From: Oculina patagonica
Lineage: Eukaryota
Direction of reading: 5' to 3'
DNA: 64,000 bases
NCBI RefSeq assembly: GCF_052425735.1
Contig: NC_135761.1
Location: 8,494,001-8,558,000 of the forward strand
Shown piece by piece: positions 2,841 to 59,766 of the stretch (position 1 is its first letter; each line of letters begins with the position of its first letter). A program made the translations under genes and the position numbers. The notes beneath the pieces are model-generated. The model worked only from the letters and a program-made list of their open reading frames with translations. It was not told where the DNA came from and did not search any database.

Positions 2841-4039
2841 TTAATGACATAATGGTCTCAATTTATAAAAATATATTTCGCACAATACAAATAAACGATT
2901 GAACTAGACGTCTAGAAGATATAAATTTGTAACACTTAGCAAAGTGCAGCCTTTTCGCAATACTTAATAAAGGCGGGGTTTTACCTGAAGACCAATTTTT
3001 CCAACGCTTTAGGTGGCTGACGCATTTCTCCTAATCAGGTAACTACTATTGTCAAGAAAATGATCACAACTTTTTGACCAATGATTAGGTATTTGTTTCA
3101 TACCATTACTGTAATAGCAACTGGTGAAGAATAGTAGTACTGACTTAAAGTATAAGGGCTGGAAAACACTGAAAACCATTTCAGCCGCGTTTCAAGGATT
3201 CCAAAAAAGCTTTAATTATCCCATATATATTTGTTTTGCAGTATTTTGTTAATTTTTGGACGATTTTGGGGGATGTCTGGGAGGCGATAGTTTTTCTCAA
3301 AGGATTAGTAAAATTTAGACAAATAAGAAATATTGGAGATTTAATGTGATTTTAAAATTTAAATTTGAAGTTAAAAATTGGTGGACGGACACCAAACAGT
3401 CTCCTGACAACCCGGAGTGCTCTTGCGAGGGGGTCAACTGTTTGGAGGTGTTTCCATTCTTTTCTTCAATCCCTTCTTTAAATCTCTTAAAGTTCCATTC
3501 AAATTCAGGTAGAACCCCACCTTAAGTTTTGTTCTTGTGAGAAAACAACAGAAGTCAAAGGTTGCGTGATATAACCAAGCATGGATTTTAATTCTCCCTC
3601 CCTTTCCATCTCCTTAGCCTTTCACCCCCACCTGTCCCTCCCTTTCTACTCTCATTCAATTTAATGTTTGTTTACATTTCCTAACCAATTCAGTATCGTA
3701 CTAATCTGTGCCAAGCAACCAGATAATGACAGAAATTTGCCTTAATTTTGATCTCCCATACCAAGACCTTAGAGTATAAACCGCTAATAAAACAAAACAC
3801 ACTTGATAATAATTATCTGAGGTTATACACCTTGCAGTATTAACGTACTAACGAACTTGATAACAAACCCCATGTCGTACTAAGGATTTTTACTGATCAA
3901 CATAGAAAATAAGTTCACAATGGTTTGTTCCCAAAACGTTTTTTACTGTACAGAGGGTCTGTATATTGACCTGTAACTTGTATACCGTATTGAAAACTTC
4001 AGAACGAACCGACTTCTGCCCGCTACCATGATATCATGT

Positions 4040-5421
4040 TGAAAAATTAGCTCGTTCGAAACCGTAGTAAAATCGTTAGAGACAGACAAGATACAGCCGT
4101 TTACTGGTAGTCTTTGAAAATCCTGAATTTCGTCAAAATGAGCCAAAATAAAGTTTTAAAATTTCCTTTATCAATATGGTTCTTATCTTTTAATTCAATT
4201 CTATGAACTGCTTTTATGCAGTACTGTCCACAAAGATTTCAATTTCCTCAAAGTTTCGGGACAAATGGATACAAAATATTTCGTGCAGAATGTAATTTGA
4301 TTAAGCGAATGTTTTCGCGTCTATAAATACTCCAAGCAGTGAATGGAAAACCGTTTTGTTTTAATCGATGAGTACCACTTTCAAATAGTTATAATCCATA
4401 AAAAATAACAATCAGATCAGAATACAATAATTATTAATGTAAGGTCTCGCTATTATGTCTCGGCAGAGATACTTCTTTTTGCAAGTTCAAATGTATGCAA
4501 ATTTCGTGTGAAATGTAATTCGATTCCATTGTCTTGTTTACAAAGTCTTTCTTAAGAAAGTTGTATTTTCGTGAATAAAACCCATTGGCCTGTTTTGTTT
4601 TCCTGATCATGTTTGTCTGTGATTTTTACAAAACATGTGGTCTTTTTTTTCGGAACTTTAAGTTGTACAAAAATTCCTATTTTGAACACAGATGTCACTT
4701 CCGGAATTTCTCATCTAAAATTCAATTGGTATTTAATTATAATTATTCGAAGTTTTCATTTTCGAGTCATCTTTTCATTCGATAGCATTACTGATCTCGT
4801 AAAAAATTCCATTCAAGTTCACACCAATACTGTACATTGCCAATGTTTTGCTGACGTCTTGAGAAGTGTCTTACTAACGTCACTAGTCAAATCTAAAATA
4901 TATCCAAACCAAGTTGTGCAAACATTCTACTCTTTGTGACAGGCGACTTTGACGCCCAACTGTGCGGAAATGAAAATCGACATACTTCTTGCTAAATATA
5001 TAAAAAATAGTTTTAAAGTGGAGTCCGCCTCAAAAAAATGTACCGCCAGATCACACTGCTATTTGTAGAAACCAGCAAAGCGTCTAGTTTCAAAGTTTCC
5101 CACAAAAACATTGCGTGACATGAATGACGTTACCCCTTTTATTTACAAAAATAGCTTCAACTTGTCAAAGCAACTACAGTTTCACAATGGTGATTATTAG
5201 TACTTTACCCGTTAAGCTTTTTTCTCTGTCCTCCCGCCGAAGCAAAGAAGAGAATCAGATTGCAGATTAGCCCAAAAGTCGACCCAGTGTTCCTACAACG
5301 ATTTACTGTCAAAACTGAAATGAAACCGATTGGCCCAGGCTATCCCCGTCATTTTTAGCCGACAGAAGACTATCGTCTAGGACGACCAAAGGGTAAACTA
5401 TAAATCGGCCACGCCCGATTA
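4040..5421. repeat. Diverged direct duplicate of 7515-9733 including a second HINE 5' terminus
   Basis: Colinear but clearly diverged similarity once the 8427-9479 MITE is removed; both copies end in CCAAAGGGTAAACTATAAATCGGCCACGCCCGATTAA. Confidence 0.85.
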
Positions 5422-6429
5422 ATAAGTCCTTGACGGTTCTTGTCGTTTTTCGGTGCCTATTCATCTTCGGCATCTTTCTCATCCACCTCTCGTTCTGTCC
5501 TGTGTCTGTCATCACACGAAAGAAAAGCTGATTCTCAAAAAATCTGCCACAAAAGGAAATTGACAAAAACAATATGACAACCATATATCGAAAGTTTCTT
5601 ATTCTAAAATTTTATCATACGTCTTAATTCAGAGCTACAAAGAAGTTCCTCCTTTTGAGTTATTGATACTGTTCTTACAGTACCTCTTTCCACTAGCGAA
5701 ATTTTACAAAATTCCTTCGCGGCGAAAAGGTAGCGCGAATCCAGAACAGACTCCAATCGAGAGTGGGTTAATTCTAGATTACTATTAATTAACTATTACA
5801 ACATTCATTTTTAAAATAGTTTCCCAAGCCGACTAAGCTAACTAAACGTCGAGTGTATCTTTCAGTAAACGGGTGACCCTATTCGGCGGAATGGCGGAAT
5901 GATGGAATGGCACGGCGGAATGGCGGAATGGCGGAATATCCTAAAACGCGGAATGACGGAAAATCCTAAAATGCGGAATGCGGAATATCCTAAAACGCGG
6001 AATTGTGAAACATTAAAAAAAGAAGCAACAACAGCAACAAAAACAAACAAAAGGAAAATTATAACTGCTAACTTTCTCAGACGACGATTAAGGGTAAGAA
6101 TGTCGCTAAGAATGATTCAAGTACTTAAACTTGTGGATATTCGTCGCTGTGACAGAAAAGCCAACTTGTTTACAGCGGCTGCTAGCAGTAGAAAACCAGA
6201 AAACAGTAAATATAACCCATAGACGAAAGGTTCTTTATATATCTTCTTAATCCTTCGAAGGATACTCGAGCGCATCGTGATCGAGGGAGGATTTCGTTAT
6301 TTTACAGAGTTCTTGTCCCGCTCGAGACAATGAACGTATAAAGCCGATGTACGCTAACGAAGCCGTTAGAAAGAAAACGAAAGGGCCTGAAATTAACTGA
6401 GTTTGTACTGAGAAATTAAAAAAAAGGAA

Positions 6430-6546
6430 ATCCACAACAAGGGGTTTCCAGATGGTCACCCATCCAAGTACTAACCCCGCCCAACAGGGCTTAACTTTGG
6501 CGATCGGATGAGAACCGTTGTTTTCCATGTGGTATCAGAAAGAGCG
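6430..6546 (-). rRNA. 5S rRNA-derived unit (divergent/pseudogene) in left TIR
   Basis: Minus strand ATACCAC...GGTTCTCATCCGATC...AGTTAAGC...TTAGTACTTGGATGGGTGACC followed by oligo-T; 5' helix I degenerate. Confidence 0.8.
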
Positions 6547-6656
6547 CGTAAATCAGCTTATAACAGTGTAAATCCACTTAAATCATCGTTCAAAAGATCC
6601 ATTATAACCAGGTGTTTCTGTTCTTTATTTGCACGACTCTTGTAAGTCTTTGCTTC

Positions 6657-6773
6657 GTCTGGGACTGATACCACAAGGAAAGCACTGGTTCTCGTCTGAT
6701 CGCCAAAGTTAAGCCCTGTTGGGCGGGGTTAGTACTTGGATGGGTGACCATCTGGAAACCCCTTGTTGTGGAT
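6657..6773 (+). rRNA. 5S rRNA-derived unit (near full length, divergent) in right TIR
   Basis: 117 nt colinear with metazoan 5S; A-box AGTTAAGC and C-box TGGATGGGTGACC intact; T-run terminator from ~6778. Confidence 0.85.
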
Positions 6774-8426
6774 TTCCTTTTTTTTTTAATTTCTCAGTAC
6801 AAACTCAGTTAATTTCAGGCCCTTTCGTTTTCTTTCTAACGGCTTCGTTAGCGTACATCGGCTTTATACGTTCATTGTCTCGAGCGGGACAAGAACTCTG
6901 TAAAATAACGAAATCCTCCCTCGATCACGATGCGCTCGAGTATCCTTCGAAGGATTAAGAAGATATATAAAGAACATTTCGTCTATGGGTTATATTTACT
7001 GTTTTCTGGTTTTCTACTGCTAGCAGCCGCTGTAAACAAGTTGGCTTTTCTGTCACAGCGACGAATATCCACAAGTTAAAGTACCTGAATCATTCTTAGC
7101 GACATTCTTACCCTTAATCGTCGTCTGAAAAAGTTAGTAGTTATAATTTTCCTTTTGTTTGTTTTTGTTGCTGTTGTTGCTTCTTTTTTAATGTTTCACA
7201 ATTCCGCGTTTTAGGATATTCCGGCATTCCGCGTTTTAGGATTTTCCGTCATTCCGCGTTTTAGGATATTCCGCCATTCCGCCGTGCCGTTCCGTCATTC
7301 CGCCATTCCACCGAATAGGGTCACCCCAGTAAACAAAACATGCCGTTATGACGCTGGAAATCCAGCTCACGCATACTATACCCCGTGACTCACGCAAACC
7401 TCCGACTTACGTGCTACTACAGTCATTCCTTTCTAAACATTTTTTTTTGACCACCACCGTACCTTTCTACCCAAAAAACTCATGAAACCGCCCGGTTTTA
7501 ACCTGTTTTAACCTTTCAAAAATTAGAGCGTTCGAAACTAAATAAGATCCGTAATCACAAACAACATACAGCCGTTTACCAGCACTCTTTAAAACTCCTG
7601 AAACCCTTCAAAATCAGGCAAAATAAATCTTTGAAATAACCTTTATCAATGTTTCTTATTTTTTATTCAGTTCTATAAAATGCCTTTCATACACTACTGT
7701 CAAACAAAAATTTCAATTTCCTCAAAGTTTCAAGACAAAAGAATAACAAATATTTCGTGCACAATGTAATTTGATTAAGCCAATATTATCACGTCTAAAA
7801 ATACTTCAAGCAATTCAGTGAAAACCCGTTTTTTTTTCGTATCAACGAAAACCACTTTCGAATAATCAATACATGAAAATAACAATAAGATCAAAAGGAA
7901 GAAAGGAACCTTTCTAATTATTTGAAGACTTTCAAAGCCGTGATATTATGCATCCAATCCGCGATAAAATTTAATTACAACAAAATCCAAGTTCTCATTT
8001 TGAAGTCCATTTTTTTCAGTTGATACCTTTATCCAACTTGTGAAAAATTCCATTCAAGTTCCTATTAATACTGTACATTCCCAATGTTTTGCTCAGGTCT
8101 TCAGAAGCGTCTTACTAACCAAATCTAAAATAATTCCAAAACATGCTGTACAAACATTCTACTCTTTGTGACAAACGACTTGACGACCAATTGTTCAGAA
8201 ATGAAAATCGACACAGTTCTTGCTAAATAAAAAAAAAGTTTTACGGCGGAGTCAGGCTCAAAAAATATACCGCAAGATCACACCCCCATTCATAGTCAGA
8301 AACCAGCAAACCATCTAGTTTGCTAAAAAAAACACTGCGTGACATCAATGACGTTACCTTTTTCATTTACAAAAATAACTTTAACTTGTCAAAGTAAGTG
8401 CAATTTCACAATGGTGAATATCAGTA

Positions 8427-11059: not shown

Positions 11060-11131
11060 TTCCCACGACGGGAATCGAACCCGGGCCGCGGCGGTAAGAG
11101 CGCCGAATCCTAACCACTAGACCACGTGGGA
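11060..11131 (-). tRNA. tRNA-Glu body with CTT (Lys) anticodon; T-stem mismatch
   Basis: TCCCACGTGGTCTAGTGGTTAGGATTCGGCG-CT-CTT-AC-CGCCGCGGCCCGGGTTCGATTCCCGTCGTGGGAA followed by a T-run. Confidence 0.9.
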
Positions 11132-24793: not shown

Positions 24794-24821
24794 GCTGCCA
24801 GCTTAATTACAAACCACAAAC

Positions 24822-24837
24822 GGCTCTTTTAGGAGCC
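24822..24837 (+). terminator. Histone 3' stem-loop (H2A)
   Basis: AAAC-GGCTCTTTTAGGAGCC-ACCA. Confidence 0.9.
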
Positions 24838-25228
24838 ACCAAATGTTGAAAAAAGTCATGATCAATTTTGAAGTGAAGCGACATTAGTTAACTAGTGTCC
24901 GTACTGTAACATCTCATCCCAGACGCGAGCGAACGATAAAACCGCCATCTTTTATGCATGTGTCAAAACCAAAAACAAGGCGATAAGGTTGGGAAAAAAG
25001 TTTGTCTACAGACCAAATACTAACGTACTAAAACGGAACACCTGATTAGAGATTTAAAAAAAGCAAATCGAGTTCTACAACCACGCACTCCTAAAAAACA
25101 AAACAAAAGGTAACATGTTTCACTTCACCAACCATTGATGGAAAGTTGTTTAGTGTGTATTTGACTAGCGGCGCCGGTTCCACAACAAACAACGAAAAAC
25201 AAGACCAGGATGTCGCGAGGGAAAATAA

Positions 25229-50713: not shown

Positions 50714-50785
50714 TCCCACGTGGTCTAGTGGTTAGGATTCGGCGCTCTTACCGCCGCGGCCCGGGTTCGATTCCCGTCGTGGGAA
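50714..50785 (+). tRNA. tRNA-Glu body with CTT (Lys) anticodon; T-stem mismatch
   Basis: Identical to the 11060-11131 copy; anticodon at 50747-50749; T7 terminator at 50786. Confidence 0.9.
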
Positions 50786-58700: not shown

Positions 58701-59766
58701 TTTACGTTTTTAAATTTTGATAACGACTGCACTGAAAGCCAACTGACTACTCGTTCAATAGTGATGCACCGAACCACGCAAATTATAACTAAAATCTTTC
58801 CGTACAAACACAATATTTCCCTTGCGGTGTTCGCGACTCGTTCACAGTTACAAAGAAACAAAACTCAAATCCCCTTTAAAGCGTGCGTAAACATTTTATC
58901 GCAGTTTCACCGCATCACGGTTTTTCTTTTCGCTTGTTGACGATTCACGGAAAAAATAAAAATTTACAGAGCAGTGTTGATAATAAACTGCGTGTTACAA
59001 ACGGCACAGAGTAATATGTGTAACTTTAAACTTGCTTGCACTTTCATCACTTGTTATGTGTCTTACCAACAGCTGATTGGGACTTGCTCGCTAGCCTACA
59101 AAATAACAAAACTTTAAATTTGGCGCCCGTTTCTTTGCGCCTTTTATCTCAGTTACATGTGTTTTTACTTCAGCTTTCGTATTGCACACGGTCAATCAAG
59201 AAGGAGAATATATGATTATAATATGATACAATATTGGTCATTGCTTTTATTTATTTGGTGGCTCCTAAAAGAGCCGTTTTGTTTATTTGACGCCGAGTTA
59301 AGAGTGCTTCTTTACTTCTTCTTGGTCGCTGTAGTTTTCTTGGTACCTGCCGGCTTTTTGACCTCCTTCTTAGTGCCAGGTTTCTTTGCGGCCACCTTCG
59401 ACTTTGTTGCTGTCTTCGTGGCTGATGGCTTCTTGACTGTGGACTTCTTTGACGGAGCTTTCTTGGAAGATGGACTTTTGGCTTTTGTAGCAGACGTTTT
59501 CTTAGAAGGAGTTTGTTTCTTGGCTGCAGGTTTCTTGGCTGCAGTTTTCTTTGTAGCAACGGGTTTCTTAGCCTTGGCTGCGGGTTTTTTACTCGGCACG
59601 GCGGGCTTTTTGGACGGCTTTTTCTGTTCCTTTGGCAGCTTAAATGATCCCGATGCTCCCACGCCCTTGGTGTGGAGCAATGTACCACTGGCTGCACCCT
59701 TCTTCAGAGCTGTTTTGATGTGCTGGGCTGCTGTATCTCCGACCTTGTAGTTTGCTTTGATGTACT
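58701..59766 (-). repeat. Inverted duplicate of 22369-23449 (H1 3' part plus downstream DNA)
   Basis: Near-identical; ORFs 23210..23509 and 58686..58940 mirror each other. Confidence 0.93.
59312..59766 (-). pseudogene. H1: Histone H1, 5'-truncated, 15-bp in-frame deletion
   Basis: Starts at YIKANYKV; stem-loop at 59260-59275. Confidence 0.92.

Follow-up and report, generated by a model that had tools for sequence, protein, structure and literature searches.

A foldback DNA transposon family of the coral Oculina patagonica with paired 5S-derived units and predicted Pol III control regions in its inverted arms

RNA polymerase III (Pol III) small-RNA promoters are known as engines of SINEs (short interspersed nuclear elements) and of a few TRIMs (terminal-repeat retrotransposons in miniature), and to our knowledge no foldback transposon carries a Pol III gene-derived unit in its arms. 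Here we present the analysis of a 1456-bp near-palindrome at positions 5871-7326 of a 64,000-nucleotide stretch from the coral Oculina patagonica (C4:8494001-8558000 of the 529-Mb genome; the whole stretch is termed the window and plain coordinates refer to it), in which such promoters seem to be kept in a cut-and-paste element. With a probability that we put at about 0.8, it represents a non-autonomous class II foldback family with paired 5S-derived units, the units having constrained, predicted Pol III control regions and owing their pairing to palindromisation.

A 2024 review of transposon sequences derived from ribosomal DNA (rDNA) places 5S only in SINEs and in the Cassandra and Ajax TRIMs, and among DNA transposons lists only Pokey, with spacer repeats (PMC10946416, Table 2), which agrees with the known 5S captures named in a preliminary description of this locus. 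In Kojima 2024 on TRIMs with Pol III promoters (PMC10886601) the words TIR (terminal inverted repeat), inverted repeat, MITE (miniature inverted-repeat transposable element) and "transposon" in a non-retro sense are absent. The literature search found no DNA transposon with 5S in its TIRs; Repbase and Dfam lay outside that search and may hold a prior entry. In its movement the element is an ordinary foldback or MITE-like class II transposon, and the novelty would lie in a family-wide, apparently constrained pair of Pol III promoters.

Cassandra of plants and Ajax of nemerteans are the closest in content, being short and non-autonomous with a 5S-derived segment in both terminal repeats (PMC10886601; PMC10946416); there too conservation centres on the promoter boxes, and the 5S fold of the RNA has been lost. 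They are, however, class I elements with direct long terminal repeats, a primer-binding site, a polypurine tract and 5-bp duplications, whereas the foldback falls outside the TRIMs by its inverted repeats and 8-bp duplications. The Pol III transcript of Cassandra and Ajax, like that of SINEs, is their transposition intermediate; the foldback bears no sign of an RNA intermediate, and a Pol III transcript of it cannot be the transposition template because termination follows immediately on each unit. SINE3 and further SINEs with a 5S head share the 5S-derived origin of that head, an internal promoter better kept than the rest and homology from +1. The foldback differs from them in that it has neither a tail derived from a long interspersed nuclear element (LINE) nor a 3' end that is A-rich or made of simple repeats, and its duplications do not vary in length as theirs do; its units are followed by a T run and arm sequence, are present as two inverted copies inside TIRs, and are accompanied by constant 8-bp duplications as a cut-and-paste integration signature.

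In architecture the nearest counterparts are Drosophila FB, Galileo (P superfamily) and long-TIR derivatives of Mutator-like elements (MULEs), which likewise have dominant, homogenised arms with short tandem repeats in subterminal position, enclose a small unique loop and are non-coding. Duplications are 9 bp in FB and 7 bp in Galileo, whereas those of the 5S foldback are 8 bp, rarely 9, and the termini differ. Mutsu and Dada DNA transposons target small-RNA genes, 5S included, and so are class II transposons associated with 5S genes, but for them 5S is an outside target, whereas the foldback has it within its TIRs and inserts at 8-mers that are unrelated. Pokey and mPok (piggyBac) show that a DNA transposon or MITE can contain rDNA-derived sequence, yet these are intergenic-spacer repeats with no 5S unit, not within the TIRs, and the target is TTAA in 28S (PMC10946416).

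Anatomy of the element and its 5S-derived units

The element consists mostly of two inverted arms, 5871-6538 and the reverse complement of 6665-7326, which are identical in 644 of the 671 columns of a gapped alignment (96.0%), are 99% alike over their middle 410 nt and together make up 91% of its length. A short non-palindromic loop of 126 nt (6539-6664) separates them, and the outer ~130 nt of each arm are built of short direct repeats, in 8-nt and ~25-nt units, which we infer to be putative transposase-binding sites; inverted arms, subterminal tandem repeats and short loop together give the element its foldback character. The preliminary description had reported a 1456-bp element with an exact 8-bp duplication and TIRs of ~660 bp, which is borne out by arms of 668 and 662 nt and by cagtaaac on both sides. 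A Pfam search of two open reading frames in the arms matched no family, and the element is without coding capacity. Its features are the following.

5863-5870, no strand: left target-site duplication cagtaaac, an 8-mer that is single in paralogous copies of the host repeat
5871-6538, plus strand: left arm (long terminal inverted repeat), 668 nt, 96.0% against the reverse complement of the right arm
5871-5886, plus strand: left terminus, 16 nt, starting GGGTGACCC; 171 exact genomic matches against 1 in the control
5884-6005, plus strand: subterminal direct repeats, 8-nt GGCGGAAT-type and ~25-nt units (repeat families D1 and D3)
6418-6425, minus strand: T8 run resembling a Pol III terminator, behind the left 5S unit; at least T4 in all family units
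6426-6547, minus strand: left 5S-derived unit (Rfam 71.2 bits; alignment to host 5S)
6449-6466, 6474-6479 and 6482-6496, minus strand: box C, intermediate element and box A of the left unit
6539-6664, no strand: central loop, in which both units have their 5' ends and which includes their upstream spacer; of all parts the least conserved between subfamilies
6657-6773, plus strand: right 5S-derived unit, complete from +1 (Rfam 75.1 bits; 84% identity to host 5S)
6707-6721, 6724-6729 and 6737-6754, plus strand: box A, intermediate element and box C of the right unit
6778-6787, plus strand: T10 run resembling a Pol III terminator, behind the right 5S unit
6665-7326, minus strand: right arm, 662 nt; its subterminal repeats lie at ~7195-7317 and its terminus at 7311-7326
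7327-7334, no strand: right target-site duplication cagtaaac; contigs join 5862 to 7327

Rfam RF00001 has one match to the minus strand, at 6426-6545 (71.2 bits, E 4.8e-13), and one to the plus strand, at 6658-6773 (75.1 bits, E 4.6e-14), each far above the gathering score of 38 bits. The two units thus detected stand head to head across the loop and face outward, in agreement with the earlier proposal of an outward-facing 5S-like gene at the inner end of each TIR. In comparison with the host 5S gene (L022:1501-1619, 117 bits) they show 80-84% identity across the whole 5S body. In the right unit homology to the host gene starts at +1 (6657) and reaches the T run, and upstream of it identity drops to chance level (10 of 30 positions); homology of the left unit begins only at ~+11, its first ~10 nt and the upstream region being different sequence. 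All six mismatches between the two units fall in their 5' halves, which corroborates the earlier remark that the arms differ in this half of the unit.

The sequence features of a type-1 Pol III promoter are present in both units, namely box A with 14 of 15 host positions kept (C63T), the intermediate element with 6 of 6, box C with 16 of 18 (GC to AT at +93/+94), the box spacing of the host gene and a closing T run. Boxes A and C had been called intact before; box C is better termed near-intact. The oligo-T terminator that had also been noted is found after each unit as the T10 and T8 runs listed above.

As a separate observation, the first eight letters of the terminus, GGGTGACC, recur as the box C core of this coral's 5S gene. 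The 8-mer stands at 5871-5878, 6454-6461 and 6742-6749, each arm being bounded by an inverted pair of it, and the chance expectation is ~0.03-0.05. Box C was considered as an alternative transposon end, for which there is no support: the solo-arm locus L050 stops a few nt beyond the motif with no duplication, and is therefore a truncation.

Conservation of the predicted control regions

Constraint was assessed against the host gene, within the family and between subfamilies. In the right unit, only 3 of 48 positions at +50 to +97 differ from the host against 16 of 72 elsewhere (Fisher's test, p=0.02; p=0.05 without the first ten positions), and the same test on the left unit gives p=0.002 (p=0.03 without the first ten). 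Mean minor-allele frequency within the family is 0.026 in the control region, as compared to 0.084 at +11 to +49 and 0.059 at +98 to +119. Between the main subfamily and subfamily A, boxes A and C are 0.90-0.95 identical and the mid-arms 0.5-0.8. The terminal 175 nt reach 0.83-0.96, except for one bin at 0.72, as expected of transposase-binding ends, and it is only these ends and one short stretch that top or equal the promoter in conservation between subfamilies.

The RNA offers a different picture. Minimum-energy folds of both units are not of 5S shape, and RNAalifold on 24 units returns a non-canonical consensus with a covariation term of -0.38 and 1 compensated pair, so that the covariation proposed as a check in the preliminary description did not appear. 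Of the helices formerly ascribed to the right unit, hand pairing recovers 8 of the 9 pairs of helix I, whereas the minimum-energy fold does not take the 5S form; the left unit is devoid of the 5' strand of helix I. Selection on RNA structure was considered for the pair C29T and G48A in helix III of the right unit, which looks compensatory, and was rejected: both are CpG transitions, for which reason the pair was given no weight, and the family shows no covariation. With 71-75 against 117 bits, non-canonical folds and no covariation, the units do not have the properties of functional 5S rRNA genes. As RNA structure is without covariation, any constraint acts on promoter DNA, and there is moderate evidence, by comparison of sequences, that promoter DNA rather than RNA is the constrained entity.

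The most serious alternative accepts a real foldback and takes its 5S units for inert captured pseudogenes, bound by no Pol III factor, of no use to the element and persisting through copying and re-homogenisation of the whole palindrome. We regard it as quite plausible, at somewhat under even odds. Capture of host fragments is common in non-autonomous DNA transposons, and also in its favor are the missing 5' end of the left unit, the 4-nt insertion and T4-only terminator of subfamily A and the internal deletion of the left unit in L046 and L047. Inert units are less easily reconciled with a control region that has ~3.5-fold fewer host differences than the rest (p about 0.02), is the least variable part within the family and, along with the transposase-binding ends, forms the conservation peak between subfamilies. 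In all subfamilies each unit is directly followed by at least T4. The similarity does not stem from conversion by host genes because the host states at +63, +93 and +94 are never restored.

Several further observations weigh against the account favored below, some of them also favoring the captured-pseudogene alternative. The conservation profile among main-subfamily copies is nearly flat along the element, and an arm stretch at 6802-6826 is conserved like the promoter (0.93 between subfamilies). To these are added the folds and the missing covariation described above. The host 5S gene has a TATA-like TTTAAAT at about -32 to -26 with no equivalent at that distance in the element units; if coral 5S needs an upstream element, the units may therefore be weak or silent. 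In public runs holding the element, examined as contigs from libraries whose RNA status was guessed, the contigs of guessed-RNA runs include the spacer as well, a part that outward transcription by Pol III would leave uncovered. In these runs the central 373 nt are better represented than the element as a whole, and the same is seen in a run of unrecorded type; the pattern is therefore one of conservation among copies, not of expression. Contig depth was for the same reason rejected as a measure of expression, the central part being better kept in runs of unrecorded type too. Lastly, no transposase domain lies within 10 kb inside any terminus listed, as judged by comparing domain matches with ~125 terminus coordinates, ~150 of the 171 exact terminus matches being listed.

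On balance we favor the foldback family with constrained, predicted control regions, for which the following course of events is proposed. One complete 5S copy, from +1 to the terminator and with no host homology upstream, would have lain beside the centre, and palindromisation would have copied the 5S from ~+11 onward to the other side, giving a complete right and a 5'-replaced left unit. The same copying may still be active, as suggested by the two complete units of subfamily A and by outward growth over 425 bp of a neighbour. The control regions would be constrained as DNA and most likely still bind TFIIIA/TFIIIC, and the units would drive short 5S-like Pol III transcripts of ~120 nt stopping at the T runs; in at least some copies, live Pol III promoters seem marginally probable. 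A long hairpin RNA made by Pol III, as envisaged in the preliminary description, is unlikely because each unit ends at once in a T run.

By this account the family would scatter a few hundred Pol III promoter/TFIIIC sites through the genome. Cut-and-paste movement needs no RNA intermediate, and selection on the promoter, if any, must therefore act through something else, for example chromatin state, insulation or small RNAs, which makes the role of Pol III/TFIIIC sites for mobile DNA a testable question. What the transposon might gain is speculative, open or insulated chromatin being one possibility, and we consider it doubtful that the units benefit the element. Also tentative, and rather unlikely as a whole, is the farther-reaching view of the family as a class II counterpart of Cassandra and SINE3, in which a lineage would have been selected to keep two live 5S-type promoters, its copies being kept open or insulated from silencing by TFIIIA/TFIIIC binding, its sites seeded and its size increased by copying of flanks, ends of other transposons included, to the opposite side. 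If true, hundreds of Pol III/TFIIIC sites and 5S-like RNAs would have been seeded across coral genomes.

The 5S pair across the family and its insertion sites

Rfam found 36 matches in 18 of 18 scanned loci, two divergent 5S in each, and all 24 extracted copies hold two segments resembling host 5S, including L046 and L047 with their deleted left unit. Two more diverged relatives, found through weaker Rfam scores, have element-type units with element-type flanks; L058 among them again forms a foldback, its units being of right type (complete) on one side and of left type (5'-replaced) on the other. Subfamily A shows the complete right-type 5' end, together with an identical 4-nt insertion, in each of its two units. 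The pair of 5S units is ancestral and kept family-wide. The earlier claim that 5S is an integral part of the TIRs is therefore sustained by the 24 of 24 full-length copies and the diverged relative, and the contrary case named with it, in which most members would be without 5S, is excluded. For 5S annotation in corals it is of consequence that each copy passes the Rfam 5S threshold twice.

The host genome has its own 5S genes in tandem arrays. The main class scores 117 bits and has a 2005-bp period (C1 and C1187); a second class scores 94-96 bits with a ~518-bp period (C10). The classes are 88-89% identical and have flanks of their own (C10:9461610-9469043, L051 and L052, as against C1:45938691 onward, L022-L027). 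Origin of the element units from a variant host class was examined and rejected, the genes on C10, C12 and C9 being no nearer to the units than the main array gene.

A single accident, in which one SINE3 or 5S retro-copy entered one transposon copy and was inverted locally while most members stayed without 5S, is very improbable. Homology to host 5S exactly from +1 to the terminator does fit an RNA-derived origin of the first captured unit, but a retro-copy source, if any, dates from the origin of the family rather than from the window copy. The unit is followed by no SINE body, LINE-derived tail or A-tail; a T run comes next, and after it arm sequence. An isolated SINE3 insertion with subsequent inversion is ruled out because 24 of 24 copies and L058 keep two segments and 17 different duplications surround the insertions.

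These insertions were recognised from the ends of the element. The 16-nt terminus occurs in exact form 83 times forward and 88 times in reverse genome-wide (171 in total), as compared to 1 and 0 for the reversed control, and both ends of the 24 copies carry it identically or with at most one mismatch. The genome holds many copies at 77-95% identity. A metagenome scan with an element-specific 26-mer gave no match. Among the 24 extracted copies, 15 show exact 8-bp duplications, all different; a further one shows 9 bp, and in three the duplication is imperfect. L015 and L019 (outer pair) contribute two further exact 8-bp duplications. This brings the total to 17 insertions with different exact 8-bp duplications; the preliminary description had asked for copies with different duplications and both 5S units to be counted.

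Empty sites were found for the window copy. The paralogous flank-repeat copies L061 and L062 read uninterrupted through the site with cagtaaac once, and contigs of four public runs (three organisms) join 5862 to 7327, skipping 1464 nt and sharing 8 letters. The empty sites prove insertion and the 8-bp duplication. As proof of an allelic polymorphism the contigs were rejected, the flank being a repeat with at least 40 near-identical copies; because of this repetition they probably stem from paralogous sites. The flanking host repeat itself extends over about 3772-5870 and 7335-8274 of the window. At least 40 scored copies of it, among 1487 first-look candidates, are 97-100% identical, and because they are so alike the window insertion must be recent, younger than a very young repeat copy.

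Conserved inverted ends, duplications of fixed length and differing sequence and empty sites are the properties of a class II TIR element, and integration of the cut-and-paste type with 8-bp duplications is supported. We are close to certain that this is a real mobile family with integral 5S units. As it has no coding capacity and yet integrates with 8-bp duplications, it must be moved in trans by a transposase. Dispersed inverted 5S orphons or an rDNA assembly artefact, which Rfam scores above threshold and several 5S gene classes in the genome might suggest, can be dismissed as extremely improbable in view of the precise common ends, the differing duplications, the empty paralogous sites, the same family in contigs of independent runs from several organisms, and true 5S genes that lie in tandem arrays at 94-117 bits.

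Palindrome growth, relatives and neighbouring loci

In a tree of all 48 arms, grouping is by subfamily first and by side second. Arms of one lineage share diagnostic changes, and one arm is therefore occasionally copied onto the other. The difference between left and right 5' ends is ancestral and not post-insertion decay because it is common to all main-subfamily copies and L058. Homogenisation of the arms from the termini inward, as formerly supposed, does not agree with this ancestral difference, with a subfamily A palindrome that extends through the whole 5S, or with composites that grew outward.

Such composites are seen at L002, L004, L008, L010 and further loci, where a foldback with no duplication of its own is flanked by a 425-bp inverted repeat that is 93-99% alike between loci. 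The 425-bp flank is the left part of a separate element of ~850 bp with ~90-bp TIRs and 9-bp duplications, found natively at L069:51-897 and L070:51-889 with termini starting GAGTTTGATCG. Past the junction the native copies carry unrelated sequence, whereas the composites carry there an inverted copy of the left 425 bp. In L004 the outer arms lie at 1072-1499 and 2981-3408 with the foldback at the exact palindrome centre, L014 is alike, and the outer arm abuts the foldback terminus at no fewer than 8 loci (at least 8). From this junction structure it follows that the foldback inserted into the ~850-bp element and that the palindrome then spread outward to the terminus of the neighbour. The outcome is a 2.3-kb element with the neighbour's end on both sides, and four composite loci have different 9-bp duplications; the composite has therefore since moved, on borrowed ends. 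Taken together, the composites provide a dated, sequence-level snapshot of a foldback growing by flank copying and gaining new ends.

Elements with the same termini but no 5S were also encountered. L035:501-2425 (C5:5118547-5120471) is 1.9 kb long and combines the same termini and subterminal repeats with an unrelated interior devoid of 5S; this type has at least 4 copies (others at C12:2438664, C13:21506465 and C4:22094112), and the duplication of L035 is 9 bp with one mismatch. It may be a deletion derivative of a putative autonomous element. The subterminal direct repeats are well kept between subfamilies of the 5S foldback and are common to these relatives. Two MITEs, L040:201-464 (264 bp) and L041:201-402 (202 bp), share only the terminal 30-40 nt with the 5S foldback. 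As the same termini bound three kinds of element, a shared transposase is likely. A 72-nt segment of the 5S-less relative (L035:816-887) recurs at dozens of loci with 92-93% identity as a short interspersed repeat and is not a tRNA by Rfam.

Autonomous candidates were looked for as pairs of termini 2-10 kb apart (L034-L038) and rejected, these being 5S foldbacks interrupted by insertions, none with a transposase; the insertion in L036 holds a reverse-transcriptase fragment. In the domain comparison, the MULE domain PF10551 had 18 matches and the IS1595/Merlin domain PF12762 had 44, none near a terminus listed. The hAT domain PF05699 had none inside a terminus pair among the best 150 of 386 candidates, and the P-type domain PF21787 had 15, all far from the termini listed; PF12017 gave no match. 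The MuDR partner suggested in the preliminary description was thus not found near the termini listed, and the duplications are 8 bp, not the usual 9 bp or more of Mutator, so that neither the 9-11-bp duplications nor the transposase partner of a Mutator/MULE assignment was observed. Of the insertions, 17 carry an 8-bp and only 2 a 9-bp duplication. hAT elements have short TIRs that usually start with a YARNG-type motif, to which the element terminus GGGTG shows no fit, although an 8-bp duplication fits hAT. The 8-bp, rarely 9-bp, duplication appears to fit hAT, P or Merlin better than Mutator, the terminus being unlike hAT; duplications are 7-8 bp in the P superfamily and 8-9 bp in Merlin/IS1595-like elements.

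At C6:38483374-38490408 there are three partial foldback copies (query positions 55-1043) with a period of ~2.5 kb, an element fragment apparently amplified in tandem. The window belongs to a region in which tRNA and histone genes abound: four tRNA genes, of which at least two are near-identical, lie at 11060-11131, 15878-15949, 19608-19679 and 50714-50785, and four histone 3' stem-loops at 22870-22915, 23599-23643, 24817-24862 and 59235-59280.

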